Assembly: GCA_004431415.1 (NCBI GenBank)
Contig: QPMI01000059.1
Coordinates: 186,001 to 250,000, forward strand
Source of the DNA: Cyanophora paradoxa CCMP329
Taxonomy: Eukaryota > Plantae > Glaucophyta
Length of the DNA: 64,000 nucleotides
Direction of reading: 5' to 3'
In this document: positions 6,462-34,309 of the stretch, one piece after another
Layout: every line of letters begins with the position of its first letter
Numbering within the stretch: the first letter of the stretch is position 1
The notes under the pieces: model-generated
The model's database searches: none
Told to the model about the DNA's origin: nothing
The model's input: the letters and a program-made list of their open reading frames with translations, nothing else
Program-made: the position numbers and the translations under genes

Positions 6462-9400
6462 ATGGCAACCCAGCCGTTCTCTCGCCTTCTCGCAGCTCTC
6501 TCGTTCGCCCTCGTCGCCGTCCTGCTCGTCGGCTTCAGCGTAGACTTCGCTTCCGCAGCGTCAGCGAAGGTCAACTTCGATGGCACATGGAATTCCGGGA
6601 ACTCTGCGCCCATCGGCGTCTCGTCCGATGAGACTATGGCAGTCGGAGTGGACATGGTGAAGCCGCAGATGGGCGCGAAAATCATTCTCGACAACAATTT
6701 CCGGGACCGGATCCGCCTGTGCGTTCAATCGGTGTATATCTGATCTGCAAATCTAGATCTGGTCCATGCTCAAACTAAACTGGGGGGCCCCATGGCCATT
6801 CCAGACAAATCAGCGGCGAAGAAAGCTATATTGGCTTGAACATGAACTGCGCCGCGGATTCAACCGCCACCAAATGCGACACCTATGGCGGCTCTAACGA
6901 CTACCTGGCCGGCATCACGAACGCGGCTGCCTCGGTATTCACAAAACCTGCGATACGCTGGGCATCCATGGCCAAGACGAAGCTGTACGTTGGCTTCACA
7001 ACAAAAGCAACCAAGCAAGTTTACGCGTGCAAGATGGTACGCATGTTGCAATATTAATGGCCGCCAGCTCTGCAGCCGCAAATTCTAATTGCAGTCAATT
7101 GTTGCGTTTCTGCGCAGAGGTTCCGGATCTCTCGCTGGGGTGGCACTGCAACGAATGCTGCTGACGATCCAACAGCGTTCTTCGCCGTCTACGCGAAGAA
7201 GGACGCCACTGCCCCCACCGACGCGCCTGCCCTCGACGATGCCGCTGCCGCTGCGCCGCATTATTCATCTATTGTCCAAGGCCTCACCGAGCCGGCTGAC
7301 ACAGCTGGTCCGGCGTACGAGATGTGCGCATGAGATTCATTCTTATCTAATTATTATCACCAATCACATTTTCTTTGTGGTTCCTACAGACACGAGAAGA
7401 GCATCAAAGATATTAGCGGGCTTAATCCAGTCGCTGCGAATGAGCACGTTACACTCTGGACGTACTTTGCAAACAAGGCTAGCGGCTTTGAAACTACATT
7501 CACCATCAAGGAAGCTAGCATTGAGGTGCGGTTTTAAGCTCTTTGAACGCGCCCACGCCTTCGATATATATGTTTCGGGTTAGCTCTTTTATTTTACGCA
7601 TCTTGATTTTTGTGATCAGTTTATGGATTGCAGCACCTGCGACTGTCCAACCAAAACAACGACGCCGGTAGCCGAAAAATGCGAGGACGAGACGCTGTGG
7701 AGCACCTACTTCCGAGCGCTCGAGATCCCTTCATTGGATATCGCTCCGACAATCGGCGAAAATGGGTCGCCAGATCAGAAAATTCCTGCGGGCTACGCGT
7801 TCAGAATGTCCATTTCCGATCCATCCAACATGCGCGATTTCGGAGAGTTGCTGGACTTCACTGCCGCAAATAACGCTAATCTGATCCGCTGGATCCCCAC
7901 CGGATATTCGACAACACTTGGCGCGAGCAGCACAGTCTCAGGGCTTGCGGCGATTCCAACCACGTTCACGCGTCCGGCATCCGCCCAGGGATCCACGGCG
8001 GGCTACAACTCTGGCGAGCGTTACTGGTATTTCACACCGTCACAGCACATGTGCGCTGCTTTGAAGCCGTGCTATTGATTGGATTGGATGAACAAGCAAC
8101 TCACCGTCACTCGCAGGACACTCACCGTCAGCACTTGCAAGGGCCGCAGATTCGATGGAAGCAATAAAGACAAGTCTTTCGACACCTATCTCTACGCTTT
8201 CAAGGCCAAGGAGCTTTGCGCTAATCTCGACAAGGCTAACAATCGAATCACCAAAACTGGCATGATTGACTTCAAAGGTGAAGGCATTTATGTGACCGTT
8301 TCCTTAATTTATAACAAGAATTTGCAATCACGCAGACACTGGCGCGAATCCAACGGCCAGCGGAGCCAGTTCAATCTACGAAGTGACTGACGCCACCAAG
8401 ACATGCGGAGGCGGCGAATCGTTCACTTTTAATGCTTGCAAGGGCGTTCAATACGCCTTTGCTGTGGACGTCAAGTGGGCCTATGGAGAACCTGCGACCT
8501 TCACCTTGAAAGGTCAGTTTCTCGAATTCAATGAAAAACTGTATATACGTAATTGCGATGTCCAACGCTTGAACACCAGCTGGGACGTGGGCTGGTGACG
8601 ACACATGTCGTGCGTGAATGCTAGCCGCCTGTCAATTTTCCTCGCGATCGGTGCTAACATTAAGTCCCTGCTCCTGCTTAGCGGTCATTGCTACACCGAG
8701 CCCTACGCCGAGCCCGTCTGCCACGCCGAGCCCATCTCCCTCTCCGAGCCCCACCGAGGCGCCCACCCCAGCGCCGACGACGCCGCCGGCCACCTCCGAC
8801 CCGGGCGCGGGCGCGAACCCCGGCACTCCGGGCACTCCGGGCACGAACCCCGACGCCCCGACGCCGGCGCCCACCCCGGCCTCGGCCGCGGGCTCCGGCT
8901 CCGGCTCCGGAAGCGGAAGCGGAAGCGGAAGCGGAAGCGGAAGCGGAAGCGGCACCCCTGCCACCAGCGGCACGCCGGCCCCGACGCCCACCCCCGAGCT
9001 CCCGAAGGTCTCGGCCGGCAACCCGCCCAGCGGCGGCTCTTGCACCGCCTCTCCCGCGACCGTCAAGGCCGTCGTCGACAAGGTCACGGTGCGCGGATAA
9101 TTACGTGTATATGTTATATGTTGAATAAAGTGCTTCGGCTATCAACGTGATTTTGACATCGCGCTCTAGGTGACTTGCACTGGCTGGGGCGCGAGCGCCT
9201 TCCCACTCACGTGCGTCAACAAATTTCATCTTAGTCAAATACAGCCTCTAGACCTGACACATTAACAGGTACACTGTCACCGGCACGGGCTACGCGAGCG
9301 AGCTCGCCCTCGACTCTCCTGACGCGACTATCAATTTCTTCTTCCCTGCTGTGTGTGAAGTGAATTGTTTGAGTGAATAGAATCGAAAACTTATTTCGTG

Positions 9401-11470
9401 ATCGATTGTAGAGCTCCGGGGGCGCGGTGACTTCGTCGCTCACGGTCAAGGTCAAGGACCCGAACGGCCTCTCGGCGACCTTTGCCATCCCGAACGCCAT
9501 CACCGTCACGCCCGTCGTCGACTCGTCCAAGCCGCCCGCCGCCCAGTTCGACGTGCGAATGCGCCAACCAGTCTAATGCACTATGCCCCGGCTGATGGCG
9601 ACGCCCGGCAGGACATGCTCACCACGTTCAACCAGGAGATGGCTAAGATCATCGCGGTGCGCCGCTCGGGTTTGCGATTCATAACTTCGATCCCGATATT
9701 GACGTTCTCGTCTTGCTTCTCAGGACAACACGCTCAAGTTCTCCGAGAAGATGGCCAAGATCCTCGCTAACATCGAGTCCCTCAAGGAGTACTACTCGAA
9801 GGCCACCGGCACCACCCTCCGCCGGGCCCTCCGCCAGACGAACGCCGACCTGCTCTCCAAGCTCTCCGGCGCCCTCTCCACCGCCATGACGGTCTGTCTG
9901 TATATAAATACAGATGGTTTTTATATTTGTAATCTCATTACGCGGACGCCTTCAGACCGTGACGACGGAGGCGCAAAAGTCCGGCGTCGACCTCAAGGAT
10001 GCCGCCGTGCGCTTCCTTCAAATGAAGTCGCTTATTATAAAGCAACGCGCCCATTCACCCTAAAGCCTCTCGTTTCATTCTTCAGACCGCCGGCGCCCTC
10101 GTGAACTTCTTCTCGTCCGTCGCCCCCGTCGCCTCCAAGACCGGCGCCCTCTCCGTCCGTCCAACATTGTGTTCTTTGCAGCGATAACACGCCGCTTACA
10201 CGCCGTCCAGGAATCCGCGGCGATCCAGGGCACGCAGCTCCTTCTCAAGGTCATCAAGGAGAACCCGGTGGGGCACATTGCTTACTTGTTCATCATCTAT
10301 ATATTATATATTTGCGAGCTAACCCGCACTTGAATATTCAAGAACCTCGCCACCACTCCCGGCGTCAACGCTGCGGTGAGCGTTTGCTGCTTCGACGGGG
10401 GCGGACGCACGCTTACTCGCTTCTGAACTTTTCCTTTCGCGCAGGCGCTGCAGGAGAGCCTCGCCGGCCTGGTGGCGGCCCTCCCGCCGTCGTCCTCCGT
10501 GGCCGCCAGCGTCCGCCAGGAGACCCAGAAGGCCCTCGCCGACGTCTCCGCCAAGGTCCGAAAGCTTATAATTAATAGCCCTTAAGTTATACAAGACCTT
10601 AAGTTATAAATAATACTGATCATGAACGCGCCGCGCAGATCACGCTGAGCAGCAACACGACGAGCTGCGGCAACCAGAACCCGAACCGCGCGGCCACCGA
10701 CTCGACCCCGTACAGCTTCAAGGTCTGCCCGGCCAAGGCCGGCCAGGCGCAGTCCCGCTCGCTCCGCGTCCGCCCCGCCGGCGCGACCCGCGACGTCGTG
10801 GTGCGTTGTGGTTTTTATCGAATACCTCTAAGTGGAATCGTAACAATTCATGTGTCGCAGATTACCTTCCCGGCCAACGCGAACGCTGGCGGTGACTTCC
10901 AGGTCTGCTTTATTACCTGTAACGCTGTATCTGTATCTTACACGTTTCTGATTCTCACCGCGACTCGTCCGCAGGCGATGGTGGCCCTCCCCGCGGCCTC
11001 GGGCTTCACGGCCCCGCCCTCCGGCTTCAAGATGCTCTCCTCCGTCTACGAGGTCACCGCCTCGACGCTCACCGGCCCGCTCAAGGAGTTCCCCGGCGGC
11101 ATCCAGTTTGAGATCCCGGCCTCGGGCTCCATCGCCACGGGCCAGAGCGTGCAGCTCCGCTGGTTCGACGAGGCCGCCAAGGAGTGGAAGACCGAGGGCT
11201 GCTCCGCCCCGACCCAGTCCTCCACCACCGCCGGCACATACACCGCCACCTGCACCCACCTCACCGCGGTCCGCCTTTATTTAAGCTTGACCATTCCTGA
11301 ACCCAAGTCTAACCGTTGAACTCTCGCAGTTCGCGCTGCTGGCGGGCGGCAGCACCCTCGGCGTCCCCGGCCTGAACGCGGCCGGCTCCGCCGCCTTCCA
11401 GGTCGCGGCGTCGGCCCTCGCGGCGACTCTCGCGGCCGTCGCGGCGCTCTTCTTCGCCCGGCGCTACTAG
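6462..11470 (+). CDS. Multi-exon surface protein, paralog 1: signal peptide, variable domain A, PPC-like domain B, PT/GS linker, REJ-like region, GAIN/GPS, C-terminal TM/GPI-like tail
   Basis: Signal peptide MATQPFSRLLAALSFALVAVLLVG. GT-AG exons join in frame: PPSGGSCTASP...VTCTGWGASAFPLTY...VKVKDPNG (REJ-like), QLRWFDEAAKEWKTEGC...ATCTHL|TAFALL (GPS motif), tail AAFQVAASALAATLAAVAALFFARRY*. Confidence 0.85.
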
Positions 11471-12913
11471 AAGTAGCCCCGGCAGAGGAAGGCTAAAGAG
11501 CACATAGTAGCAACGCTTCCGATCCGTTTGATTCCGATCCGGTGGCCGAGCAATAAATAGCGTAGTTTGTAGGCGTTTCGCTTTCGCTTTCGTTTCGTCC
11601 AATAAAGACATTAGGTGTTGCCAAGGCATATAAATTCTCTTGGCGGTAGGGGTTTTGTTTCTCATAGATTTGTTATTCGTAGACGAGATATACCAAACAC
11701 GTGCAGCTGCATCTTTCTGCAGTGTATTGTATTTCAAGATAATGAATGCATTCATAATCATGATCTTTAAGATCGCCGACACAGATTGACTCCACAAGCC
11801 CGGGCTTTATTCACTCCAGACCAGATCTGAATGATTTTCAGCTTGGGCCTGCGCCAGGCCCAGTCTCCGGATCCAAATTCGGACAAAGCGACCCCCGACT
11901 TCTAAATTTCTCGCGTTCGCTACTTCAACTTCAACTTCAACGTTAACGTTAACGTTAATTATAACGGATATCGATGTTTGTCCAGAATGTCGGACAGGAC
12001 CAGCTGCAGGCCAGGCAAACGGTTACACTCCCCCACTCTGCTCCCGGATTACCAATTGCAATCGCCCTGGAGCCCCGATCCATCGCCCTCGGTCAACCCA
12101 TTCGCACCAGGCCTGGGCCCCGCACTGCCTCGTCGTCGGCGGCGGCCCCTCGCCGTCGGCTGCCTCGTCGTTGTTTTTGCAAAAGTGGACGTTGCATTGA
12201 TCATGATACGTATACACTACGGCACAGGTATCAATGCACTTTTATGTCTGCGAGACGTGCCCTTCCGACCACGCAACGTTAACTAGATAAGAAAAGAGGA
12301 CGAAAAAGATCTAGATCCAAAGCCTCGGAGGGAGTGGGCAGAGGCAGCGGCAGAGGGGGTGCAGCGGATACGGGGCAGGATGCCACTGGGAGCCAGAGAA
12401 TTCGTTCACCCCGGGGTGAAACAGTTCATTCACCCCTTTTGAGCTTATTCCACCCCGAGGTGAACGAATTTGGTTCACCTCGGCTCGAAAAACGTCTCCC
12501 GGAGCGCTGTAATCAAGTTCAATGTGCTATCAAATGCGTGGTCAGATGTATGGCAATAAAAACAGGCAGCCAGATGTGCCAGATGCACGCACGCGCGCGC
12601 TGCTTTAATTTGCTCAAACTCGAGCTCATGCTCGAGACTTCGCGGGGCTGCAAGCTGCGAGAAACGAACACTTACAGACAAGCTTAAGCATATGCATATG
12701 CGCGCGCGCGCGGCCGCCGAAGACGTCGTCGGTTGTTCGGAGTTTGGAGCTCGAGCGCAGTCCAAGCGCGGGCGAACTGTCGTTTTGGCTCACCCTTCAA
12801 AGCGGTTCAAGCCGCGGGGGCAAGCTGCCCGTGAGCTCGGCGGTTGCTGCTACCAAAAAAAACGCGGCTTCCCCCCCCCGGTTCCCCCCCCCCCCCGGAG
12901 TGAAATGCTGGTG

Positions 12914-14620
12914 AAGCTTAAGTTGCTGGGGACGGACGGACGCGGCAGTTGGTCCGCTAGCTAGCGATGCCCACGTTCAGCAATCGAGCGAGCTCGAGGC
13001 CGCCGAGCGCCACTCCGACCGCGGACGCGTTATCGATGCATTTGGCGAGCCCGCGGCCGAGCCCAAGCCGAACGAGTCCACGACGCAAGAAGCGCTAGAT
13101 GAGATCAACGGCGGGCCCGCGGGTGCGCCGCACGCACCACAGTGAAGCTGGCCATGGATGCTCACGGCAGGTCCGCGCTGCTCGGGCGATGCGCGGGCGG
13201 TCTCCGTAAGCTGTTTCTGACAGGATTTCACCGAACAGATTGCGAAGAAGCCGTGTCAGCCGGCGGCAAAGCGCGCGCTCTACGATATACGCGGAGGCTT
13301 AGCCTACGGCAGGTCCGCGCTGCTCGGGCGATGCGCGGGCGGTCTCCGTAAGCTGTTTCTGACAGGATTTCACCGAACAGATTGCGAAGAAGCCGTGTCA
13401 GCCGGCGGCAAAGCGCGCGCTCTCCGATATACGCGGAGGCTTAGCCTACGGCAGGTCCGCGCTGCTCGAGCGATGCGCGGGCGGTCTCCGTAAGCTGTTT
13501 CTGACAGGATTTCACCGAACAGATTGCGAAGAAGCCGTGTCAGCCGGCGGCAAAGCGTGCGCTCTGCGATATACGCGGAGGCTTAGCCTACGGCAGGTCC
13601 GCGCTGCTCGGGCGATGCGCGGGCGGTCTCCGTAAGCTGTTTCTGACAAGATTTTATGATCACCGAACAGATTGCGAAGGAGTCGTGGCAGCTGGCGGAG
13701 GCGCGGCGGGCGGCGGCGCGGCTCGCCGGGCGGGGCGGCGGCGCGGCGGGCGGCGGCGCGGCTCGCTGCACGGGCGGGGGCTCGGCGACCGGCGGCGCGG
13801 CTTGCCTGGCCGGGCGGGGCGCGGCGGGCGGCCGCGCGGCTCGTCGGCGGGGCGGACGCACGGCGGGCGGCGGCGCGGCTCGTCGGGCGGGCGGAGGCGC
13901 GGCGGGCGGCGGCGCGGCTCGCCGGGCGGGGCGGAGGCGCCGCGGGCGGCGGCGCGGCTCGTTGGGCGGGCGGAGGCGCGGCGGCGGCGGCGCGGCTCGT
14001 CGGGCGGGCGGAGGCGCGGCGGGCGGCGGCGCGGCTCGCCGGGCGGGGCGGAGGCGCGGCGGGCGGCGGCGCGGCTCGTTGGGCGGGGCGGAGGCGCGGC
14101 GGGCGGCGGCGCGGCTCGTCGGGCGGGGCGGAGGCGCGGCGGGCGGCGGCTCGGCTCGGCGGGCGGGGCGGAGGCGCGGCGGGCGGCGGCGCGGCTCGTT
14201 GGCGGGGCGGAGGCGCGGCGGGAGGCGGCGCTACTCGCCGGGCGGGGCGGGGGCGCGGCCGGCGGCGGCGCGGCTCGGCGGGCGGGGCGGAGGCGCGGCC
14301 GGCGGCGGCGCGGCTCGGCGGGCGGGGCGGGGGCGCGGCGGGCGGCGGCGCGGCTCGTCGGGCGGGCGGCGGCGCGGCTCGTCGGGCGGGGCGGAGGCGC
14401 GGCAGGCGGCGGCGCGGCTCGTCGGGCGGGGCGGAGGCGCGGCAGGCGGCGGCGCGGCTCGGCGGGCGGGGCGGAGGCGCGGCGGGCGGCGGCGCGGCTC
14501 GTCGTGCGGGGCGGCGGCGCGGCTCGCCGGGCGGGGCGGAGGCGCGGCGGGTGGCGGCGCGGCTCGGCGGGCGGGGCGGAGGCGCGGCGGGCGGCGGCGC
14601 GGCTCGTCGGGCGGGGCGCT
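12914..14620 (+). repeat. Left arm of long internal inverted repeat (unique segment + 142-bp tandem x3.7 + ~40-bp GC-rich tandem)
   Basis: 142-bp units start at 13165, 13307, 13449 and 13591. Unit GGCGGCGGCGCGGCTCGTCGGGCGGGGCGGAGGCGCGGCG repeated from ~13690 to 14620. Mirrors 20835-23068. Confidence 0.9.
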
Positions 14621-14645
14621 GGCCGAGCGTGTCGGAGGGCCTGTG

Positions 14646-15219
14646 TGTCGCGGGCGCGATCGATATCGCGAGTTCGCGATCGACGCGGGGGCGTACCCGC
14701 TGCTGGCCCTGAGGGGGGGCCGGCCGCCGGCCCGGCGTACCCGGTCCAGGAGAGGCCCCGGGCCTAGCACTCGAATGGCCAAGGTGGCGGGGCACTCGAA
14801 GGGTGACGTGGCGCTCGGAGGCCACAGGGGGCGCGGCCTCAAGGGCTGAAAGGTTTGGCCTTCAAGGGCTGAAGGGTTTGGCGCTCGAGTGCGTCGAGGT
14901 GGCAGGACGCTCAAGGGCTGAAGGGTTTTGCCCTGAAGGGACGATGTAGTCCAGTACGTGAATTATTAAATAGCCAGAGTCGGCAGACTTCGGCAGACTT
15001 AGCCAGGCTCGAATTATATTCGAGTAGAGTGTGCACGTGGCACAGCTTCGGCTTGCGTAGCAGCTGTAATTAATACTAGCACTGCGGCTTGCAATCTCAT
15101 AGCTACGGGCTGCCTGGGACTCGGGCTGGCCTACGGTCGAGTGCATCGCAGGTCCGTACACTGTTGTACGAGGTGTGGGTCTACGTCTCTCCCCTAGACG
15201 TGCGAGACGTGACGGCACA
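14646..15219 (+). repeat. 5' LTR
   Basis: TGTCGCGGG...GACGGCACA, direct repeat of 18637-19210. Confidence 0.9.
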
Positions 15220-16090
15220 CGTTTGGGGGCTGCTCAAAAGTTCTCTCTAACTTGGACCTTGAGCTCGAGTTCGAGGGATCTTAAGCTTCCCTTGCGCGCG
15301 AACGCGCGCGCGTTCCCTCACAGCGCGCCGTGAACTGATCTTGGGCCTTTCGCGCATTATCGTGATGCTATCTTCTCGGCGACCCCTTGCTCGATCATGG
15401 GTGAGCGATCTCTGGGCATCGCCGCGCACCCTTCTAAAAGATGCGTGCTTGTCCCTTCCGAATTCTGCGGCCGCGGGCGCTGCCAGGCCGATATATAGCG
15501 TCGAATTCGGACTCTCTCAAGGCGCATGCGCGCGCCGAGATGCTGTCCTGACATGGGCTCGTTCGGGGCGCGGGCGCAGCTGTTCCATCGCAGCTTGCGA
15601 GCGTACGCTTGAGCCGGAGCTGCAAAACTTCGCGTGGAGTGGCGCTGGTCGGGCTCGGAGCTGCGGGAGCGGGACCGCGGACGCGTGCGGAGCTACAGCG
15701 CTAGCTGCGGGCTGTAGCTGCCGGCGTGCCGACGTTGCGGGCGGCGTGCAATTAATATTGCAATCGATCGGGGCCGTCGCGCGCGGGCGCACACGTGCAG
15801 GCGAGCTCGAGGGGGCCGTCGGCGGCTGCCGGACGGTCGCGATCGTGGGCGCGCGGGCGGCGTGACTCTCGGACGGCGAGCGGCGCGGGCCGGGCGCGCG
15901 CGCGCAAGGCCGTGGCGGGCTGCGAGCTCGAGTTTGGGCACGGATCGGCGATCGCGAGTGTCTTGCAGCGCTAGCTGCTGGGCCGGACGATCGCGGGGGC
16001 GCGCCGGCGTGCGCGGGGCGGACGGTGTACGCGTGCGAACACGTGCTAGCGATCGGCTGCGGGTCGATTTCGATTTATATCTCGATATCG

Positions 16091-17383
16091 ATGGCGCGGA
16101 CACGGCGATCTGGGGCGCGGGCTGCGGATGCGGCCGCGGCCGCAGCTGCTGCGGAGGAGGGGCTCGAGGCTGATCATGAGCGGGCTGAGCACGAACCCGT
16201 CGAGGGCGAGCTCGAGGAGCAGGATGGCGCCGACGGAGGCGAGCGGCAGGGGCTTGATCGTGAGGCCGGGGCCGAGACGGCGTTGGTCCTGCGGGATGCG
16301 CTGGACGCGCTGAGGGTCGATATGAAGCAGCACGCTCAGCGGCGCGAGTTGAACTCTCTCGCGGAGAATATTCCTGTCTTGTCGCAGGCGGGTCTTCTGT
16401 CGTGGATAATGTCGGTGGAGCGGCTGGGCACTTGGACTGTGCGGCCTCCGAAATATTCTGACCCTGATACTGTCTTGGCGGAGCTCGCGGTGTCAGCTCT
16501 GCAACGCGGCGCAATTGATCCTGTTGGCGGGGCCTTCAACGCTGCTGTGCTGGGGGCGATGTCAACTAAGTCGGATTTAGGCGTCTTGGATATGGCGTCG
16601 TGGACTCAGATTCGTGCACATTTAATTGGCATGGTGCCTGGCAACAAGTTTGAGCTCCTACGCAATGTTGTGAAGTCGGCTGGCAATCATTTCTCAACTT
16701 TGAGCGACCCAACAGAGTTGGACGCTCAGTCTTTTGTGAACAGCGTCGTTGTATTTCGTCGTCTACTGCAGCTTGATTATTCGGATGAGATCCTCATCGC
16801 TGAGATTATGTCGGCTGATGTCATCACGTCGGTGGCGATGATGAAGCTCATCTGCAAAATTCCGGAGGCAGCTCGCCAGGTTATTGTTGAGTGGGGCAAT
16901 GAATTCTTTCGGCGGGTGAGGTCGTTCAACGAGCTTTCAATCAGGCTTCGACAGGCGAACGTGTTGCTGGCTGCAGCCGGGACCAGCGCTAGCTCGGCTC
17001 AGGTGGCAGCCGCAGCAAGCTCGGGGTGTGAACCTGTAAATGCTGTCAACAACGTCGGGTCGAAGCGCAAGGCGTCGACGTCGACGTCGGGCGGCGACGG
17101 TTCCGAGTCGGAGGACGATCGTGAGCAGGATCAGGATTCAAGCGACAATTATGACAGCAGTGACAGCGACGGGGATGATGATGCTGGGAATTTTGTTCAG
17201 CGGCGTGGTGACGGACGCTGGTGTGTGGAGTGCAAGAGCAGCTCGCACAACACCGACATTTGCCGCTGGAAGCTTCAGCGCGAGCTGCAAGAATTGAAGG
17301 CGGAACGTGCGGCTTGGCAGCAGGAGGTTGAGCGGCGTCGCGGCTTTGGGAGCTCCGACGGCGGCCGCGGGCAGTCGTCGTGA
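16091..17383 (+). CDS. Gag-like protein with CCHC zinc knuckle
   Basis: Intronless ORF between the LTRs (ATG 16091, MARTRRSG). C-x2-C-x4-H-x4-C motif CVECKSSSHNTDIC near the C-terminus. Confidence 0.85.
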   Translation: MARTRRSGARAADAAAAAAAAEEGLEADHERAEHEPVEGELEEQDGADGGERQGLDREAGAETALVLRDALDALRVDMKQHAQRRELNSLAENIPVLSQAGLLSWIMSVERLGTWTVRPPKYSDPDTVLAELAVSALQRGAIDPVGGAFNAAVLGAMSTKSDLGVLDMASWTQIRAHLIGMVPGNKFELLRNVVKSAGNHFSTLSDPTELDAQSFVNSVVVFRRLLQLDYSDEILIAEIMSADVITSVAMMKLICKIPEAARQVIVEWGNEFFRRVRSFNELSIRLRQANVLLAAAGTSASSAQVAAAASSGCEPVNAVNNVGSKRKASTSTSGGDGSESEDDREQDQDSSDNYDSSDSDGDDDAGNFVQRRGDGRWCVECKSSSHNTDICRWKLQRELQELKAERAAWQQEVERRRGFGSSDGGRGQSS

Positions 17384-18636
17384 ATTCGAATATTTTAATT
17401 TTTCGGCGGTTCGGTCTCCGCCAGTTCGAAAAGGCCAGCGCGAGATGGCGTGGGGTGTCAGCTGCAGCTTCGCAAGCAAGGGCGCGCGGAGTCAGCTATG
17501 AATATTCGTTGATTTTGCAATTTGCAATCTGCAACTTCGAGGTGGTGCTTGCTTGCTTTCGGGACAGAAAGGAGAAGCACCAGTGCCAACGACGGCCTGC
17601 CTTCGGGACGGAAGGAGGCGTCGTGCCGATTATGTCCGGTGGACCGGCGTCCACAGCCGAGGCGCGGACCTGCCCGGGCCCTGATCAGGACGGGTCGAGG
17701 AGGGCGCCTATGACAGCTGGGTGGGACGGGGGACGTACGGCGGTTGAGGGTCGGGAGGGCCCGAGGTCGTCGTCCATCCGAACGTGACCGGGTCGGACCT
17801 GCATTGGACGGACGTGGGCTCAACGTCTCGTCACCGCAGGTGGCACATTTTGAAATCCGAGTGCGGCGGCGCTCGGTACCCGACGTCGGAGCGGGCTCGA
17901 GCGCACCATCGCTCGGAGCAGGGCGTCCGCGGCGCATCATCGTCGCGGGCTGAGGCCAGTGAGGCTTGGCGTCGGGTCCTTTCAGGCGCACCATCGTCTG
18001 GAAGAGGCATCTGTACGCATCATCGTCGGATGCTGGAGTTTTGGAGGGGACAACGGGAGGTCGAGCACAGCTTCACGCGTCGGGTGGGGCGGGGGACGCT
18101 CCAAACCATCTGATGTCGTTCGAGGCTAGTGCCGTCTTTCGTTTGTGCTCCTGACCCTGCGGCGGTGTGAGCAACCTCGGCGGACATTTTCGGTCTTCGG
18201 ACTCGATGTGCAAGTGCACCTACCGCCGGCGGACCCACAGCAACCGTCAATTTATCTGTGCGTCCGGCCGCTCATTTTATTCTCGGGTCGAAAATGGTGG
18301 AGGATTTCGTAAGGCGGATTTGAGAACAAGAGCGGGAATTTTGGAAGTGCCCGTCGCGGCGGCGTCCGCGTTCTGAAGCACAGGATTCCCTCTTTTCTCG
18401 CCGTCTACAGATCCAGCCACAGGCCGGAGGGGCCAGACTCGCAAGACGTCGAGGGGCAGCGGCGTCTGCAGGGCCGACGTCGACTGCGGGTTACGAAGGG
18501 ACGGAGCCGGTCGATGTCGTTGTTCGGCAGCTCACCCTTCTAAATTGTGGATATGTAAATATTCGGGGACTTTCGATTTGCTGCGGCGAACGTCGCGGGA
18601 TGGACGCCGAGGACGGCTTTCTTGTGCTGCGGCGAA

Positions 18637-19210
18637 TGTCGCGGGCGCGATCGATATCGCGAGTTCGCGATCGACGCGGGGGCGTACCCGCTGCTGGCCC
18701 TGAGGGGGGGCCGGCCGCCGGCCCGGCGTACCCGGTCCAGGAGAGGCCCCGGGCCTAGCACTCGAATGGCCAAGGTGGCGGGGCACTCGAAGGGTGACGT
18801 GGCGCTCGGAGGCCACAGGGGGCGCGGCCTCAAGGGCTGAAAGGTTTGGCCTTCAAGGGCTGAAGGGTTTGGCGCTCGAGTGCGTCGAGGTGGCAGGACG
18901 CTCAAGGGCTGAAGGGTTTTGCCCTGAAGGGACGATGTAGTCCAGTACGTGAATTATTAAATAGCCAGAGTCGGCAGACTTCGGCAGACTTAGCCAGGCT
19001 CGAATTATATTCGAGTAGAGTGTGCACGTGGCACAGCTTCGGCTTGCGTAGCAGCTGTAATTAATACTAGCACTGCGGCTTGCAATCTCATAGCTACGGG
19101 CTGCCTGGGACTCGGGCTGGCCTACGGTCGAGTGCATCGCAGGTCCGTACACTGTTGTACGAGGTGTGGGTCTACGTCTCTCCCCTAGACGTGCGAGACG
19201 TGACGGCACA
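18637..19210 (+). repeat. 3' LTR
   Basis: Direct repeat of 14646-15219. Confidence 0.9.
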
Positions 19211-20834: not shown

Positions 20835-23068
20835 CCGCCGCCGCCCGCAGCACCTCCGCCCCGCCCGACGAGCCGCGCCGCCGCCCGCCGCGCCTCCGCC
20901 CGCCCAACGAGCCGCGCCGCCGCCCGCCGCACCTCCGCCCCGCCCGACGAGCCGCGCCGCGCCCGCCGTGCGTCCGCCCCGCCCGACGAGCCGCGCGGCC
21001 GCCCGCCGCGCCCCCGCCCGGCCAGGCAAGCCGCGCCGCCGGTCGCCGAGCCCCCGCCCGACGAGCCGCGCCGCCGCCCGCCGCGCCTCCGCCCCGCCCG
21101 CCGAGCCGCGCCGCCGCCGGCCGCGCCTCCGCCCCGCCCGCCGAGCCGCGCCGCCGCCGGCCGCGCCCCGCCCCGCCCGGCGAGAAGCGCCGCCGCCCGC
21201 CGTGCGTCCGCCCCGCCCGACGAGCCGCGCCGCCGCCCGCCGCGCCTCCGCCCCGCCCAACGAGCCGCGCCGCCGCCCGCCGCACCTCCGCCCCGCCCGA
21301 CGAGCCGCGCCGCCGCCCGCCGCGCCTCCGCCCCGCCGACGAGCCGCGCCGCCGCCCGCCGCGCCTCCGCCCCGCCCGACGAGCCGCGCCGCCGCCCGCC
21401 GTGCGTCCGCCCCGCCCGACGAACCGCGCGGCCGCCCGCCGCGCCCCGCCCCGTGCAGCGAGCCGCGCCGCCGCCGCCCGCGCCCCGCCCGGCCAGGCAA
21501 GCCGAGCCGCGCGGCCGCCCGCCGCGCCCCGCCCGGCCAGGCAGGCCGAGCCGCGCGGCCGCCCGCCGCGCCCCCCCGGCCAGGCAAGCCGCGCCGCCGC
21601 CCGCCGAGCCCCCGCCACGTGCAGCGAGCCGCGCCGCCGCCCGCCGCGCCTCCGCCCCGCCCGCCGAGCCGCGCCGCCGCCCGCCGCGCCTCCGCCCCGC
21701 CCGCCGAGCCGCGCCGCCGCCTGCCGCGCCTCCGCCCCGCCCAACGAGCCGCGCCGCCGCCCGCCGCGCCTCCGCCCCGCACGGCGAGCCGCGCCGCCGC
21801 CGCCCGCGCCCCGCCCGGCCAGGCAAGCCGAGCCGCGCGGCCGCCCGCCGCGCCCCGCCCGGCCAGGCAAGCCGCGCCGCCGGTCGCCGAGCCCCGCCCC
21901 ATGCAGCGAGCCGCGCGGCCGCCCGCCGCGCCTCCGCCCGCCCGGCGAGCCGCGCCGCCGCCCGCCGCGCCTCCGCCCCGCTCGACGAGCCGCGCCGCCG
22001 CCCGCCGCGCCCCGCCCCGCCCGCCGAGCCGCGCCGCCGCCGGCCGCGCCTCCGCCCGCCCGCCGAGCCGCGCCGCCGCCGGCCGCGCCCCGCCCCGCCC
22101 GGCGAGAAGCGCCGCCTCCCGCCGCGCCTCCGCCCCGCCCGACGAGCCGCGCCGCCGCCCGCCGCGCCTCCGCCCGCCCGACGAGCCGCGCCGCCGCCCG
22201 CCGCGCCTCCGCCCGCCGCGCCTCCGCCCCGCCCGGCGAGCCGCGCCGCCGCCCGCCGTGCCTCCGATCCGCCCCGCCCGGCGAGCCGCGCCGCCGCCCG
22301 CCGCGCCTCCGCCACCTGCCACGACTCCTTCGCAATCTGTTCGGTGATCATGAAATCTTGTCAGAAACAGCTTACGGAGACCGCCCGCGCATCGCCCGAG
22401 CAGCGCGGACCTGCCGTAGGCTAAGCCTCCGCGTATATCGGAGAGCGCGCTTTGCCGCCGGCTGACACGGCTTCTTCGCAATCTGTTCGGTGAAATCCTG
22501 TCAGAAACAGCTTACGGAGACCGCCCGCGCATCGCCCGAGCAGCGCGGACCTGCCGTAGGCTAAGCCTCCGCGTATATCGGAGAGCGCGCGCTTTGCCGC
22601 CGGCTGACACGGCTTCTTCGCAATCTGTTCGGTGAAATCCTGTCAGAAACAGCTTACGGAGACCGCTCGCGCATCGCCCGAGCAGCGCGGACCTGCCGTA
22701 GGCTAAGCCTCCGCGTATATCGGAGAGCGCGCGCTTTGCCGCCGGCTGACACGGCTTCTTCGCAATCTGTTCGGTGAAATCCTGTCAGAAACAGCTTACG
22801 GAGACCGCCCGCGCATCGCCCGAGCAGCGCGGACCTGCCGTGAGCATCCATGGCCAGCTTCACTGTGGTGCGTGCGGCGCGCCCGCGGGCCCGCCGTTGA
22901 TCTCATCTAGCGCTTCTTGCGTCGTGGACTCGTTCGGCTCGGGCTCGGACTCGCCATCAACACCGCGTGCGCAGTGGGGCTCGGTGGCCTCGACCCGGGC
23001 TCGCTGGACGTGGGCATCGCTAGCTAGCGGACCAACTGCTGCGTCCGTCGCCCCAGCAACTTAAGCTT
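20835..23068 (-). repeat. Right arm of long internal inverted repeat
   Basis: Reverse complement of 12914-14620, with a longer 40-bp array (~1.5 kb) and the same 142-bp units (22330-22840). Confidence 0.9.
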
Positions 23069-23915: not shown

Positions 23916-25682
23916 GCAGGGCTCGTAGTCTGTCTTCGCCGCAAGTTTATTAACGTTAACGTTCTAAATCTGTCTTCGCCGACTTCGCACTCACAATCGC
24001 ATGCGCAGGTGCAGCTTTAGCTGACTGCAGCAGCAGTGCAGCTGGACTCACCGTGGCACTGTAGTCTGTACGACTCTATAGCCTAGCTATAGCCTAATAA
24101 GCCTATAGGTAGCCCAGTACCGAGCTAAGGTAGTAGGTACTAGTAGCGCTAGCTGATGAGTGTAATGTTGACGTAATGTGAATGAATCAAAAAATCCAAG
24201 CCTGGTACCTGGTACATTTTTTTCCGGGAACTCGATTCTGATTGGTCAGAAACCACTGCGGGCGAAAGGTTTCGTTCACCTCTCTTCGTCCACCGCCTCA
24301 AAAACACCCCGGGGTAAATGTGACGTGTTGGCTTTACCCCGGGGTGAACGGGTTCGTTCACCCCGGGGTGAACGAATTCTCTGGCTCCCAGTGTGCGCGG
24401 GGAGGAGGGCGCGGGGACGAGAGTATGAGTTCCCGAATTCGAACGGGACGCGGGAAACTACGTATACAGCTTTCGTGCGGGGTCATGCGGGGTCGGGGGG
24501 CGTGGGGGGTCGTGCGGGTCGGGGGGCGGGCGGGGTACCGGTGGACGCGGTCGGCCGAGGGGGGTGGCCGAATCCATCGCGAGGCTAGGGGGCGACCGAG
24601 GACGTCGATCGCGACGAGGGGCGGCCGAAGCCAAAGGGGACGGCCGATCTGGAGGCCGGCGGGGAGGGGGGGCGGGGGGACGGGGCCGGGGAGGGGGGAG
24701 GGGAAGGGGGGGGAGGGTAAGGGGAGGAAGGGGAAGGGGGAGTTGAGTGAAGGGGGCAGCCGAAGCTTACGCTGAGGGAAAGGGGAAGGGCCGGAGGGAG
24801 GGGGGCGAGGAGGGGGGGGGGGGGGAAGGGGGGAAGGGGGGTCGGGGGTTGGAGTTGGGCGGCCGGCTGGTGAGTCGTCGGCGCTCGCGCCTGCAGCGCT
24901 AGCCCCGTCGCGCTCTCCCCGTTCGTCCTCCCCGCCCCCATCAGCAGGCCTGGGCCCCGCAATTTTGCGCAAAAAGGGCCGTCTTCCGCTCGAGCTCCGT
25001 TTCGCGATCGCGGTCGTCGGCGACGGAGGCGGATGCGTCGGAGGCGGAGCTCGAGGCCGATCGCGAGCCGGCCATGCATATGGGCGCCATCGCCGACGCC
25101 GGCGCCGCGCCCTCGCCGCGCGGGATCCAGAGCTTGAGGCGGGCGGTGCGGAGTGGCCGCATGCGCAGCCAGCCAGCCACCGTGCCTGGTGCCCGAGCTC
25201 CTGCCGCGCGCTGGAGCCGGAGCCGAATTCGAAGCCGGCGGCGGCAGCAGATCTAGAGGTGGGGAAGTTAAGGTCCCGCCAGAGACGCCGAGAGCATGCG
25301 CAGCGGCCGAGGCGGCATCGGCGGCGCTGCCGCTAACGCCGCCCGAGACGGTGCGGATGCCGCCGGCCCCGCCGCCGACTCCGGGGCGGGGCGGGACCGG
25401 CTCGCCCCGCCGGCGTCGCCGCCATGTCCGTCGTTGACGTCGCCACGTGCACGTGCACGTGGCTCCGGATCCCGTGCGCACCGCCCCCCCCCTCCCCTAC
25501 CCCCCCCCTTCTCCCCCCTTTCTCCCCCCCCTCCCCCCCCCGAGCTCGAACGTCAGCCCCCGCGCCCGCGACCTTAAGCCTGCAGCTGCCCCGTCCGCGT
25601 CGCCCTAGGCCTCGTCCCGCGCACATAGCTATATATAGCAAGGCCCGAACGCATTCCGCACGCCTTGCAGACGCGCCGGGCC

Positions 25683-25768
25683 CACAGGTGGAAGGGGGGT
25701 CCGTTCCGTCCGAAGCGCGCTTCCGCGAGCCGTTCCGTCCGTCGGAACGGACCCCCCTTCCACCTGTG
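25683..25768. mobile_element. 86-bp mini inverted-repeat element (CAC...GTG)
   Basis: 26-bp perfect IR CACAGGTGGAAGGGGGGTCCGTTCCG / CGGAACGGACCCCCCTTCCACCTGTG, interrupting a fragment of the 1-3 kb repeat family. Confidence 0.6.
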
Positions 25769-25855: not shown

Positions 25856-25935
25856 CATCTTAAGTAGCTTTCCGCGCGCTTCCGCCGCCGCAGCCGGCTG
25901 CGGCGGCGGAAGCGCGCGGAAAGCTACTTAAGATG
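25856..25935. repeat. Perfect 80-bp palindrome, no spacer
   Basis: CATCTTAAGTAGCTTTCCGCGCGCTTCCGCCGCCGCAGCC followed directly by its reverse complement. Confidence 0.95.
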
Positions 25936-27914: not shown

Positions 27915-28252
27915 TAGGGGTGAGTATCGAGTCCACTGCAGCTGGTCGTATTGCTCGACTCGACTCGGTACCCGGTCGAATTGCTCGGACTCGGCTCGAG
28001 TCCGGGTAGAGTCGGAGGACTCGAGTCCCGGGTCGAGTCCGGGGGGGGCTAGAAGGGGCGTTTTGGGGTACTTGCACTCCTGGTTTCCTTGGCCCCCCCA
28101 GTGCGCGGATTCGCCCCCCCGAACTCGAGTCCAAGACTCGAGTCCTGGGGAATCGAACCCGACTCGAGTCGGGTGCCCGAATTGCTCGGACTCGCTACCC
28201 GGCGGGTTTGCTCGAGTCGACTCGAGTCGGACTCGGACTCGGTGCACTCCTA
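27915..28252. mobile_element. hAT-type MITE
   Basis: Imperfect TIR TAGGGGTG..CGAGTCC / GGACTCGGTGCACTCCTA; 8-bp TSD GGCCCGGC on both sides. Confidence 0.85.
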
Positions 28253-28279
28253 GGCCCGGCCGCCCGGGCCCATCCGGGC

Positions 28280-28648
28280 TAGGGCACTGGCCGGCGGCCA
28301 AGCCGGCTAGCTAGCCGGCCAGTTTGGGCCGGGGGGCGACGGGCTAGGCAGCCGAAACCCCGGCTTGCCAGCCCAGGGGTTTTGCCGGTTTTCCCCGGCT
28401 TGTCAGCCAAGTCAGCAAGCCCGGGGCTCGCAAACGAGCCGGCGAACGAAGCATAGGTGAAGTTAGCGCGAGCTGCACCAAGCCAGACCAAGCCGCGCTG
28501 GCCACCGGTACCATAGTAACTGGAAAGCCGCTGGCAAGCCAGCCGAAATTTTGGAGCCGCCAAGCCGCTAGGGCCAGCCCCGGTGCAAGCTTTCGGAATT
28601 TTGGGCCAGCCCCGGTGCAATCTTCTAGACCCGCCGGCCAGTGCCCTA
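28280..28648. mobile_element. hAT-type MITE
   Basis: TIR TAGGGCACTGGCCGGCGG / CCGCCGGCCAGTGCCCTA; 8-bp TSD ATCCGGGC. Confidence 0.9.
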
Positions 28649-30100
28649 ATCCGGGCATGATCCGGCCCGCCCGGGAATTCGAATCCGGATCCGGGCCGGA
28701 CCCGGGATAACGGCGGGATTCCGGGAACTCGCGATCGGCGGGAAGTGAAGGAGAATCATTGAATGTCCGGGGAATCGCGTCCGACGGTCGAAGAGACATC
28801 TTTATAGCCTTTTCGCGTCGAAGAGACACCGAACTTCGTATACTGTTTTACTAACAGTAACTTCGAGTGTTCGACCGGTATTCCGGGAGTCCGACCGGAA
28901 ATCCGGGATCGGAGTCCGGGATCCGGGACTCGAGCCTCGGCGACTTGCCATCATTGATCATGAGACGGACTCGGAGTTTTCGAAGAAAACCTCCTTCGGC
29001 TCAGAGGCTCCTGGGAATCCGACTGTTCGTCGAGCCAATGGTGCGGCGTTACTATGGCACCGACATACCGTCGATACCCTATCACATAGGCCTATTACTT
29101 TTCTATATAACTACCGAACCGGTAGGTCCGGTACCCGGTACCGGTACACCGCGAGAACCGTAGTACTGTAGAACTAGTACTAGTTAATTTGCACTTCGCC
29201 GAAACTGCCACTTTACCAGCTGGAATTTTTTTAAGTATACGTAATTATATAAATCAATCTTCGCAGGGCTTTTCAATTGCAACGTTTGTTAATACAAGTT
29301 TTGCATGTATGGCGGAGACGCGGCTACCCCTAACAATTCTCGGCTTTAGCAGGCGCGAAATATTTAGTAGATCGCCCAAAAACTCTCTAAACATTTCTAG
29401 CTTTCCAGCTGCCGTATTTGAATCATACATGCTAGCAGTGCGCGTGCTAGCAAAGTTCACTGTTCGAATTCATGAGGCGACACATCATGATCATCGCGTC
29501 ACATATATATGCATCGATATTATCGACGATATACTCACAAATATGCCGCCCTTACACAAAAGGTGGCGATTCACTGAGTCAGCCTGCATGCGCAGCTGCC
29601 AGCCGCAGCCTGCATGCGCAGGCTGCAGCCTGCAGGCAGCAGCCGCTGAGCTACCGGTACTAGGGGTAGGCAGTGCCAGCTGCGCTGGATGCGTATGCAG
29701 CGGATCGTTGACTCAGTGACCAACGTTTTTAACGTTGACAGTTGATCATGCCATGATGACCCGGGCCGCCGGGGCCGGCCCGGCCGCGCCGGGCGGCGCC
29801 GCAGCCTGGCGCCAGCTCTGAGTTCAGCGGCCGGGCTAGCCTATACTATAATAGGCTATAGCTGCTAGTACCGGTGCATCATGGGAGGAGTGACCGGCAC
29901 TGACCGCGGCCGCCGCGGCGGACTGGCCCGTAGTAGCCTACTAGGCCAGTAGTTTCTATACTGGTATAGCTAGGCTAGCTATCTAGCTCTAGATCTCAGA
30001 GATCGTCGACGACCGTCGGATCTCTGCGTCAGAGAAAGGCGCTGCGCTGGCCAGTTCTGCAAGGCGCAGTTCGCGATCGTTCGTAGAACGGCAGAGAAAA

Positions 30101-33100
30101 ATGGCGATCCAGCCGCGCCCGAACTCTCGCCTTCTCGCAGCTTTCTCGTTCGCCCTCGTCGCCGTCGTGCTCCTTTCCGGGCGCGTCGCATCGGCCGTGG
30201 TGGTCACGGAGGTGAAGTGGGACGGCCTCTACGACAGCACGAACGACGAATGGAAGCCTGTGGCGGGGTTCGTCGCCGACGCCAACGTGGGATCGATCGG
30301 CGTTGGAGCGGTGTGCTCTTTTGATTGCAGCTGATATCATAGTATATATCGCAATTGCAAGCGGCTATGCGAGCGCGTTCTTCGGTCAATGTTTCCCCTT
30401 GACCGTGGCGGGCCGCGTTTTGCACGCGCGCAGCACAAGCTTCCGTCTGGGGGAGAAACGCTGAAGATTCAGTTCTCCGACGGCGGCGGCAGTCACATAG
30501 TCTTGTGCGTATATATACGTATCTGCGATTTGCACCGGTGGATCCGGACAGATCGTGAACCGAAGTGACAATACGCTCAAGCCAATTTCTGATATGAGTC
30601 TGCTGCGCAGGAGCACCACATCGACCGCCGGGTTCGTGGCTGGCACCAGTCCAACGAACAACAACGGCTGGGCCAGGTTCATCTTCACGAACGGACCTGC
30701 AAAGAAGGGCCACGAGCAGGACTTGAACGCGCCTGGCAAGTGCAAGATGGGGCTGTCGTTTTTCGGCGAGGACAGCACCAAATGCAGGCTGACTGACGTT
30801 CCCGATCCCGTGGCCTACATGTGCGGAGTCGTGCGTTCATTCATGACTCGTTTCTTCGAACCGATATTGTAATCGATCATGATCACACGAACCTCCAGGA
30901 AATCGTGGCGGGGCGGGATGACGGCAACAGCAACACGGACCTGAAAGTCGACGTCGTGTTCCAGAACTACCAGAACCTCGCCTACAACCCGTACACGAGC
31001 TCCAGCAATAGCATCCCGAGCCCTGCCTACATTCTCGGCACCATCGACCTGACCTCGGCCACGAAGGCAAACCCGACCACGTCCGTAAATTGTATTGCAA
31101 GCTATATATCCTGCTTATTCCTGAAGAACTTCTAATAAACTTTTACCATGATCAGCTTCACGAAGACCCAGGCGGATTTCCCCGTCATCGACGATTACGT
31201 GACCTCGAATAGCCAAGCTGCTGGCCAGCAACCGTACTCGCAAACGCGCAGCGGCGTGAAGGGCGGCCTCCGCGGCGCCTATTCGGGATCCGCCTTGGGA
31301 ACGTGGGGGCTCTGGCTCTTCCCGTACGGTTCGCTGTCGCACCAATAGATTCAATAATATCTTTCAAGCTTATTACATGTTCAGGGACCGGCGCGGCAAT
31401 GACGCAGAAGATCGTCATCGACCACATCAAGCTCGACATCCGCTCCTGCTCGACCTGCGACTGCGTGGCGACGACGCCGTCCCCCACGCCGTCCCCGTCC
31501 CCCACGCCCTCCGCCACGCCCTCGCCGAGCGCGACGCCCTCGCCGAGCCCCACCGAGGCCCCCACGCCCGCGCCGACGACGCCGCCGACCACCTCCGACC
31601 CGGGCGCGAACCCCGGCACTCCCGGCACTCCGGGCACTCCCGGCACGAACCCCGACGCCCCGACGCCGGCGCCCACCCCGGCCTCGGCCGCGGGCTCGGG
31701 CTCCGGCTCCGGAAGCGGAAGCGGAAGCGGAAGCGGAAGCGGAAGCGGCACCCCTGCCACCAGCGGCACGCCGGCCCCGACGCCCACCCCCGAGCTCCCG
31801 AAGGTCTCGGCGGGCAACCCGCCCAGCGGCGGCTCTTGCACCGCCTCTCCCGCGACCGTCAAGGCCGTCGTCGACAAGGTCACGGTGCGCGGATAATTAC
31901 GTGTATATTTTATATGTTAAATAAAGTGCTTCGGCTATCAACGTAATTTTGACATCGCGCTCTAGGTGACTTGCACTGGTTGGGGCGCGAGCGCCTTCCC
32001 CCTCGCGTGCGTCAACGATTCTTGTTTTTTAATTTGAATACAGCCTCTGACGCATTGACAGGTACACTGTCACCGGCACGGGCTACTCGAGCGAGCTTGC
32101 CCTCGACTCTCCTGACGCGACTATCAACTTCTTCTTCCCTGCTGTGCGCGAAGTGAATTGTTTGAGCATATCGAATCGAGAGTTCATTTCGCAATCTATC
32201 GCAGAGCTCCGGGGGCGCGGTGACTTCGTCGCTCACGGTCAAGGTCAAGGACCCGAACGGCCTCTCGGCGACCTTTGCCATCCCGAACGCCATCACCGTC
32301 ACGCCCGTCGTCGACTCGTCCAAGCCGCCCGCCGCCCAGTTCGACGTGCGAATGCGCCAATCAGTCTAATGCACTATAATCCGCAAACTATATATAATCG
32401 TCGAAGGCTGAGCGTGAAGGCTGATGGCGACGCCCGGCAGGACATGCTCACCACGTTCAACCAGGAGATGGCTAAGATCATCGCGGTGCGCCGCTCGGGT
32501 TTGCGATTCATAACTTCGATCCCGATATTGACGTTCTCGTCTTGCTTCTCAGGACAACACGCTCAAGTTCTCCGAGAAGATGGCCAAGATCCTCGCTAAC
32601 ATCGAGTCCCTCAAGGAGTACTACTCGAAGGCCACCGGCACCACCCTCCGCCGCACCCTCCGCCAGACGAACGCCGACCTGCTCTCCAAGCTCTCCGGCG
32701 CCCTCTCCACCGCCATGACGGTCTGTCCGTCTGAAACTACAATTATATGTAAGTAATTATGATCTCATCACGCGGACGCCTGCAGACCGTGACGACGGAG
32801 GCGGCCAAGTCCGGCGTCGACCTCAAGGACGCTGCCGTGCGCATGCATATGCGCTCGCGGCGAATTAAATCGCCAACAACGTCACGCGCACATGCACTGA
32901 AAGCTTTCGTTCTTCAGACCGCCGGCGCCCTCGTGAACTTCTTCTCGTCCGTCGCCCCCGTCGCCTCCAAGACCGGCGCCCTCTCCGTCCGTCCAACTTT
33001 GTGTTCTTTGCAGCGATAAAACGCCGCTGACACGCGGTCCAGGAATCCGCGGCGATCCAGGGCACGCAGCTCCTCCTCAAGGTCATCAAGGAGAACCCGG

Positions 33101-34309
33101 TGGGACACATTGCTTGCTTGTTTACCTTCGTTTATATGCGAGCTAACGCGCACTCGAATATTCAAGAACCTCGCCACCACTCCCGGCGTCAACGCTGCGG
33201 TGAGTTCATGCCGCTTGGACGGAGGTGGCCATGGGCGCACGTTTGGCCGCTGATTAACTTGGTGCTTTCGAATTCGCGCAGGCCCTGCAGGAGAGCCTCG
33301 CCGGCCTGGTGGCGGCCCTCCCGCCGTCGTCCTCCGTGGCCGCCAGCGTCCGCCAGGAGACCCAGAAGGCCCTCGCCGATGTCTCCGCCAAGGTCCGAAA
33401 GCTATTAAGCTTAAAAGACTTTAAGGTTTAAATGATGGATACATTTAATTATATATGAACGCGCCGCGCAGATCACGCTGAGCAGCAACACGACGAGCTG
33501 CGGCAACCAGAACCCGAACCGCGCGGCCACCGACTCGACCCCGTACAGCTTCAAGGTCTGCCCGGCCAAGGCCGGCCAGGCGCAGTCCCGCTCGCTCCGC
33601 GTCCGCCCTGCTGGCGCGTCCCGCGACGTCGTGGTGCGCTGCGATTTCAATCGGATACGTGTGAGCGTTGTTCTCGTTTAAATTTATGTCGCAGATTACC
33701 TTCCCCGCCAACGCGAACGCCGGCGGCGATTTCCAGGTCTGCTTCTGATTCTGATTACACGATATCTTAAACGTTTCTGATTCTCACCGCGACGCGTCCG
33801 CAGGCGATGGTGGCCCTCCCCGCGGCCTCGGGCTTCACGGCCCCGCCCTCCGGCTTCAAGATGCTCTCCGCCGTCTACGAGGTCACCGCCTCGACGCTCA
33901 CCGGCGAGCTCAAGCAGTTCCCCGGCGGCATCCAGTTCGAGATCCCCGCCTCGGGCTCCATCGCCACGGGCCAGAGCGTCCAGCTCCGCTGGTTCGACGA
34001 AGCCGCGAAGGAGTGGAAGACCGAGGGCTGCTCCGCCCCGACCCAGTCCTCCACCACCGCCGGCACCTACACCGCCACCTGCACCCACCTCACCGCGGTC
34101 CGCGCACCTCCGCCCAAGCTTGACCATTTCCAAGACCATTTGCAAGCTTAACCGTCGATTTCTCGCAGTTCGCGCTGCTGGCGGGCGGCAGCACCCTCGG
34201 CGTCCCCGGCCTGAACGCGGCCGGCTCCGCCGCCTTCCAGGTCGCGGCGTCGGCCTTCGCGGCGACCCTCGCGGCCGTCGCGGCGCTCTTCTTCGCCCGC
34301 CGCTACTAA
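30101..34309 (+). CDS. Multi-exon surface protein, paralog 2: signal peptide, variable domain A', PT/GS linker, REJ-like region, GAIN/GPS, TM/GPI-like tail
   Basis: MAIQPRPNSRLLAAFSFALVAVVLLSG. From ~31545 the exons are near-identical to paralog 1, including EWKTEGC...CTHL|TAFALL and ...LFFARRY*. Confidence 0.85.

Follow-up and report, generated by a model that had tools for sequence, protein, structure and literature searches.

Divergent heads on near-identical GAIN-bearing stalks in a Cyanophora paradoxa gene family

Two genes in a 64,000-nucleotide stretch of the genome of Cyanophora paradoxa CCMP329 (contig QPMI01000059.1; hereafter the window) encode proteins whose C-terminal portions are nearly the same and whose N-terminal heads can barely be aligned. 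How such a pair came about, and what proteins built in this way might do, are the questions that this locus raises.

Two paralogs and the family to which they belong

Gene A extends from its ATG at 6462 to 11470 (23 exons, 1157 aa) and gene B from 30101 to a stop at 34309 (20 exons, 930 aa), both on the plus strand. Both models were derived from the DNA, with exons set by coordinate; the spliced models were searched exon by exon and the joined ones used for local comparisons. Each frame is open, with 0 internal stops in A and 0 in B, and all introns are GT..AG (56–94 nt in A; 55–123 nt over both genes), sizes that agree with the mean intron of 86 nt in C. paradoxa (PMC6704402). No further copy of the family was found in the window.

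Comparison of the window with itself revealed the blocks that A and B have in common on the plus strand. The 5′ block (6441–6527 in A, 30079–30172 in B; 83% identical) takes in just ~20 nt upstream of the ATG together with the signal peptide. The 3′ block (8721–11763 against 31520–34557; 86% identical overall) starts within the repetitive linker of A, near 8721, includes 14 downstream exons that are 90–100% identical, and closes with a common 3′ flank (11471–11763 in A, with AATAAA near 11552 and 11601; 26 differences in 238 nt), past which the two loci do not align. Over their last 509 residues the proteins differ at 9 positions (pS 0.062, pN 0.011); pN/pS in the stalk is ~0.17, and by this comparison of sequences the stalk is shown to be under purifying selection. 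The preliminary description, which had seen two paralogs sharing 5′ sequence, signal peptide, linker, downstream exons and 3′ flank, is thus borne out at 83% and 86% identity. In B a single exon (31385–31884; exon 5 ends at 31328) holds the end of the head, the linker and the start of the stalk, so that the connection of these three parts does not depend on splicing.

The heads (6564–7646, aa 35–286, in A; 30200–31464, aa 34–312, in B; both on the plus strand) are ~24% identical. Their global alignment reaches z 5.7 against 500 shuffles; a local alignment reaches z 3.6, a signal that is gone once the terminal CSTCDC is removed, and taken by part the N-terminal half gives z 3.2 and the other parts z −0.4 and 2.2. 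The DNA of the heads and the introns of the heads align no better between A and B than shuffles do. Both heads have a phase-0 intron after YACKM/YMCGV and a phase-2 intron at A232/B228, the position of one earlier phase-2 intron being ambiguous as to whether it is shared, and both end in CSTCDC, in which the Ser codons differ (AGC versus TCG). A common origin of the two heads is likely, if weakly shown, the two shared introns and CSTCDC adding to the z scores. The earlier picture of barely alignable heads with surviving anchors therefore holds, and the anchors that it named are present. GC3 is 0.50–0.76 in the head of A and 0.70–0.88 in that of B, and higher, at 0.75–1.0, in the stalk.

Between head and linker, A has an extra domain (7647–8686, plus strand; aa 287–545, 259 aa) that is missing from B and from the preliminary description. 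It does not appear to be a duplicate of the head: we detected no similarity (z 0.6), and it is unrelated to either head. It has no match in Pfam, NCBIfam, PDB or Atlas. Its TLTVSTC..FDTYLY stretch may resemble sandwiches of the pre-peptidase C-terminal (PPC) type.

Several lines of evidence indicate that A and B are genuine and belong to a larger family. In sequencing run X1, taken as DNA from its behaviour, one contig spans 6566–8802 with 0 differences, and the head of A is present at single-copy depth (~40). Depth summed over the stalk is ~100–280, or ~2.5–7 times single copy, which suggests that the genome holds ~3–7 close stalk copies, and 30 of the 40 listed stalk variants in X1 carry the letters of B. 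An assembly artefact and alleles were rejected as explanations on the strength of the X1 contig, the B letters among the variants and a genome that is probably haploid (PMC6704402); probable haploidy also means that the family models described below are to be read as paralogs. X1 further contains a third copy that fits A at 6566–6664, then differs from it over ~950 nt, and matches once more, piecemeal, across the extra domain and the beginning of the linker. This pattern points to a second A-type gene in which the core of the head has changed further than the parts beside it, and the third copy may be the missing front of one annotated model.

The stop-free stretch 10639–11268, compared with 1.84 billion proteins, gave 12 convincing matches. 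The nine that were looked up, together with P0016 and P0018–20, are all EukProt models of C. paradoxa, in keeping with the earlier supposition that the host is an alga; P0010–12 are counted in by their alignment with the family. Models P0013–15 and P0017, whose matches are weak or bacterial, were excluded. The family, which the preliminary description had expected to exceed two, thus comprises 16 models besides A and B, that is, at least 18 members; head types cannot be counted from the annotation because many models have no head. Three of the models lie on tig00000246 and two on tig00000767, and near-identical stalks occur on different contigs in P0006/P0016 and in P0007/P0018/P0019/P0020. 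No database protein equal to A or B was found (best match 62%), and the two may be absent from the public annotation, be mis-modelled there or be concealed within a cluster. No relatives came to light in contigs from metagenomes, prokaryotes or viruses.

Searches aimed at the heads returned no match in Pfam, NCBIfam, PHROGs, PDB sequences or Atlas, no lectin match and no homolog, and hhalign of the A head against the heads of B and P0003 gave nothing. A fold predicted for the P0003 head, which is incomplete, could not be used (pLDDT 45, best Z 4.6). The end of the B head may resemble MAM or carbohydrate-binding sandwiches. The head of P0016 is wholly different and looks kelch-like by eye, without confirmation from Pfam.

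Expression was sought in 17 runs with the same species label, taken as RNA-like by a guess at their type, in which about none of gene A's words occur. In three of these runs, read without a control gene, not one spliced contig reaches ≥80% identity to a family member; at 80% likeness they gave short fits of ~40 nt and one 102-nt piece at depth 2 with 18 differences.

The surroundings are rich in mobile elements, as had been described, with an LTR element and a foldback-like element between A and B. The LTR element (14646–19210) is young, with two identical 574-nt LTRs (TGT..ACA) and a 4-bp target duplication (TGTG); it carries a gag-like ORF (16091–17383) with a CX2CX4HX4C knuckle, no pol was seen, and judging from its sequence it is probably non-autonomous. 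It is flanked by foldback-like inverted arms (12914–14618 and 21329–23068) made of 142-nt and 40-nt tandem units. Outside these large arms lies a 53-nt inverted pair (12384–12436 and 24341–24393; 89%), which may mark the termini of an older nested element. Hairpin-like palindromes occur at 25683–25768 and 25856–25935, the second perfect over 80 nt, and positions 8–2984 contain a duplicated block of ~950 nt with tandem units of 149–157 nt. Similar GCTGCAG-rich tandem tracts at 6050–6115 and 29580–29646, 350–450 nt upstream of A and B, could be what is left of a shared promoter or simply a common motif of intergenic DNA. Farther along, the GC-rich region 52000–62000, which has long open frames, Ala/Pro/Gln repeats and two long ORFs without a Pfam match, probably holds a gene.

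The stalk as a partial-REJ and GAIN/GPS module

Both proteins continue from the head region into a linker rich in Pro, Thr and Ser (8687–8995 in A, plus strand, 103 aa of which 64% are P, S or T; 31465–31791 in B, plus strand). In A this is followed on the plus strand by the last Ig-like REJ unit (8996–9552, aa 649–767), assigned through a Pfam REJ match on P0002, which is 81% identical here, and an Atlas REJ match; by a helical region (9612–10555, aa 768–945) that corresponds to the REJ end or GAIN subdomain A; and by GAIN subdomain B with the GPS (10639–11283), a range whose end falls just within the intron that separates exons 22 and 23, exon 23 encoding the rest of the last strand. The last exon (11330–11470, plus strand) encodes the end of the cleaved strand, a short spacer, one hydrophobic segment, a basic end and the stop. 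The constant stalk of B (31792–34309, plus strand) has the same parts, namely the REJ end, GAIN/GPS (Thr codon 34092) and the anchor.

Pfam REJ matches P0002 with E 5e-10 over profile positions 311–421, and 7 of the 20 rows examined for the family match it (best E 3e-10; positions 311–443 of 452), so that only the last ~110–120 of the 452 profile positions are represented. Pfam GPS passes its cut-off on P0001 (E 4.8e-5) and fails it on the A exon alone (E 0.031). The fold was modelled on the stalk of the paralog P0007 (pLDDT 84), which is 45–56% identical to A; in the model an Ig-like unit is followed by seven helices and then by a beta sandwich. Foldseek returned adhesion-GPCR GAIN structures as the top six matches (E 1e-7 to 2e-5). 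When the sandwich is superimposed on BAI3 subdomain B, 149 residues align (Z 11.8, rmsd 3.6), and the first 276 residues of the model find a match in a REJ cluster of the Atlas. For the beta sandwich taken by itself ZU5 domains score close (Z 10.8), and TM-scores for the whole model are low (0.2–0.27). RecA matches of the stalk profile came from tandem fusion constructs and were discarded. The REJ-GAIN/GPS module proposed in the preliminary description therefore stands as regards GAIN/GPS, including the expected structural match, and the end of REJ; a full REJ is not present.

The residues H, L and T, the catalytic triplet for cleavage in CL1 (PMC3321182), occupy positions 1108–1110 of A and are kept in all 14 of the fetched models that reach the site. 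The stalk thus carries the GPS motif, which is defined by H-L/T (or S) and a conserved Trp. The GAIN domain probably cleaves itself at HL/T, judging from the fold model and these residues, with the predicted cut in A between L1109 and T1110 (Thr codon 11263). The GPS region of A has two cysteines only, that is, one pair, whereas CL1 has two pairs (PMC3321182). Of the 48 residues after the predicted cut, the first form the last strand; after it come a spacer, a single hydrophobic run that peaks at 1136–1154, ~26 residues beyond the cut, and ARRY. All complete short tails in the family end in a hydrophobic run and a basic residue; small-residue sites precede the run, as they would for a GPI anchor, the basic residue that follows also fits a transmembrane helix, and the anchor may be of either kind. 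We found no 7TM, PLAT, 11TM/TRP channel or cytoplasmic domain in A, which has a single hydrophobic segment.

Taken together, sequence and model identify the stalk as a GAIN/partial-REJ module, and proteins with this predicted makeup are neither adhesion GPCRs nor channel polycystins. The sequences show each member to be laid out as a head, then a mucin-like spacer of Pro, Thr and Ser, the final REJ unit, GAIN and a single membrane anchor. The best explanation of A and B appears to be that both are functional genes, belonging to a family of surface proteins with signal peptides in C. paradoxa.

Separate histories of heads and stalks

The stalks of A and B are 98% identical to each other and 74% identical to that of P0003, and a stalk tree places A with B (95/96) against P0001–3. 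The heads give a different picture: that of B is 51–57% identical to the head of P0003 where P0003 has sequence, that of A is at background against P0003, and the start of P0002 resembles the end of the B head (48% over 33 aa). Since the head of B is nearest to P0003, whose stalk is farther away than that of A, heads and stalks differ in history, in a comparison of three heads that is unrooted and includes one head from an incomplete model. Poisson distances between B and P0003 are ~0.56 for the head and ~0.30 for the stalk, a head about twice as fast, whereas between A and B the head is tens of times more distant than the stalk, and the introns are unalignable and partly moved.

Hypermutation of the heads after a recent duplication was rejected: 76% protein divergence and moved introns stand against 6% synonymous change in the stalk, and the B head has its nearer relative on a stalk that is farther removed. 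To judge from these sequences, the variety of heads apparently stems from recombination or gene conversion instead. Either the stalk has been homogenised between old duplicates, or one head has been replaced between the shared 5′ and 3′ blocks. Within the stalk, introns of A and B differ by 0–33%, unevenly (chi2 60, 13 df, p 5e-8), and one run of 235 nt is identical over two exons and an intron; the uneven introns and identical runs point to patchy gene conversion. Fourfold sites differ by 5.7% and introns by 19%, which may reflect conversion, codon selection or both. The same arrangement recurs in a second subfamily, in which the stalks of P0007, P0018, P0019 and P0020 are 93–95% identical on three contigs, and P0016 carries its unrelated head. 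The divergence is thus not clock-like, the stalk being homogenised and the heads far apart, as had been anticipated; of the hypervariable heads on a homogenised stalk envisaged earlier, the homogenised stalk is upheld, and the heads look like old lineages that have been shuffled (B/P0003 head ~2 times stalk).

These observations might also arise without any variation system. A and B would then be birth-and-death duplicates in a repeat-rich region, conversion keeping the GC-rich part alike while the heads drift or specialise, with some copies nearly silent. The lack of visible expression in the RNA-like runs, a head GC3 below that of the stalk and the nested mobile elements between A and B all fit this account, and patchy conversion does not require selection. 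We nevertheless consider it unlikely, given that the head exons are all open with canonical splice sites, that CSTCDC is kept despite different Ser codons and that the pattern is repeated in a second subfamily.

Possible roles and comparison with known systems

We favour the view that A and B are conditional, releasable binding proteins, in which a GAIN self-cut provides a break-away anchor and heads and stalks are mixed by recombination, and we give this combined reading about an even chance of being right. GAIN would cut itself at HL/T, and the 48-residue membrane stub would hold the outer part non-covalently. The head, carried on a putatively glycosylated spacer, may bind partners outside the cell (attackers, other cells or surfaces) as a releasable adhesin or decoy. 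The cut would serve as a release point, a pulled or bound head being shed, and not as a signalling switch; we suggest release rather than signalling because the proteins lack a 7TM, a channel and a cytoplasmic domain. Shedding is a guess, since the cleaved strand of CL1 remains tightly bound (PMC3321182). Gene conversion or unequal crossing-over, breaking within the repetitive linker, would have put old head lineages onto near-identical stalks, and the genes would be on only in some conditions. A broader version, in which this free-living alga keeps a library of heads that are recombined onto a self-cleaving GAIN anchor and shed on contact, as a diversifying recognition or decoy system, is offered tentatively.

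The known proteins closest in layout suggest another role. Sea-urchin SpREJ1, 8 and 9 have REJ (partial in 8 and 9), a GPS just before a single transmembrane segment and N-terminal modules that vary; one region of SpREJ9 is rich in Ser, and the lectin heads of SpREJ1–3 are fast-evolving and under positive selection (PMC1934368). By analogy with SpREJ1, a sperm receptor with the same core layout, A and B might be mate- or kin-recognition receptors whose heads read partner surfaces in a rare sexual stage and signal via a partner channel or receptor. A REJ-GPS gene is known in male gametes of Ectocarpus (PMC4700764), and silence in the RNA-like runs would suit a rare stage. This analogy strikes us as doubtful, however: the literature searched gave no account of sex in C. 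paradoxa, the heads have no lectin match, and many paralogs in one haploid genome are unlike a mating-type locus. Antigenic variation in an abundant coat, which the preliminary description had raised, finds little encouragement in the RNA-like runs, which weigh against an abundant standing coat and are not proof of silence. A switching coat like that of trypanosome VSG or ciliate immobilisation antigens, with one member on at a time and heads as cassettes, is very improbable by this analogy, even with an unalignable middle between conserved 5′ and 3′ blocks, a short anchor and at least 18 members, because the abundant transcript that it predicts is not seen in the RNA-like runs, ~18 members are few for such a system and silent head-only cassettes were not found in the window.

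In VSG and ciliate i-antigens, a variable N-terminal part is joined to a conserved C-terminal anchor, with gene conversion among copies. The family to which A and B belong is likewise multigene, with a variable head and a conserved anchor; unlike those systems, it has tens rather than hundreds of genes, has kept its introns, uses a GAIN stalk and gives no sign of abundant or exclusive expression. In the literature searched, the coverage of which is incomplete, we found no description of a family of minimal, near-identical GAIN anchors whose heads are exchanged, of any REJ or GAIN protein from Cyanophora or other glaucophytes, or (in a targeted search) of such families in free-living protists or of REJ/GAIN in protists or algae. 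GAIN is present also in Dictyostelium and Tetrahymena. If heads are exchanged under selection, the family would constitute a recombination-based recognition repertoire in a glaucophyte.

With SpREJ1, 8 and 9, A and B share REJ and a GPS before one transmembrane segment, without PLAT or an 11-TM/TRP channel part. The SpREJ genes differ in that each is single-copy and has a layout of its own, and their description mentions no stalks that are nearly identical and carry swapped heads (PMC1934368); A and B differ in having one REJ unit, heads without a C-type lectin match and a glaucophyte host. The two genes form a natural domain-swap pair, with a constant stalk and different heads.

MUC1 has a self-cleaving SEA domain next to the membrane and a signalling tail. 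As a cell-surface mucin that acts as a releasable decoy (PMC2752161, PMC6491460), it offers a working analogy for the releasable-binding reading: it resembles A and B in its Pro/Thr/Ser-rich spacer and in an outer part that can be shed, as is proposed for A and B. These differ in that they have GAIN in place of SEA, a spacer that is short and a head that would be folded and exchangeable.

GAIN has been studied mainly in adhesion GPCRs and polycystins. Like those proteins, A and B have a helical subdomain with a beta sandwich, an HL/T site and varied N-terminal modules (PMC3321182, PMC12716839), and their TxFAxL strand resembles the tethered-agonist consensus of adhesion GPCRs. Unlike adhesion GPCRs and polycystin-1, they have no 7TM, 11TM, PLAT or cytoplasmic domain, and one GPS cysteine pair instead of two. 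The link between GAIN and 7TM is thought to date from stem holozoans only (PMC12716839). Since the stalks of A and B have an intact cut site with an anchor alone behind it, cleavage and force-driven release could be examined cleanly in them, and if the break-away reading is true, GAIN would have a role in release without the GPCR or channel to which it is attached in those better-known proteins.
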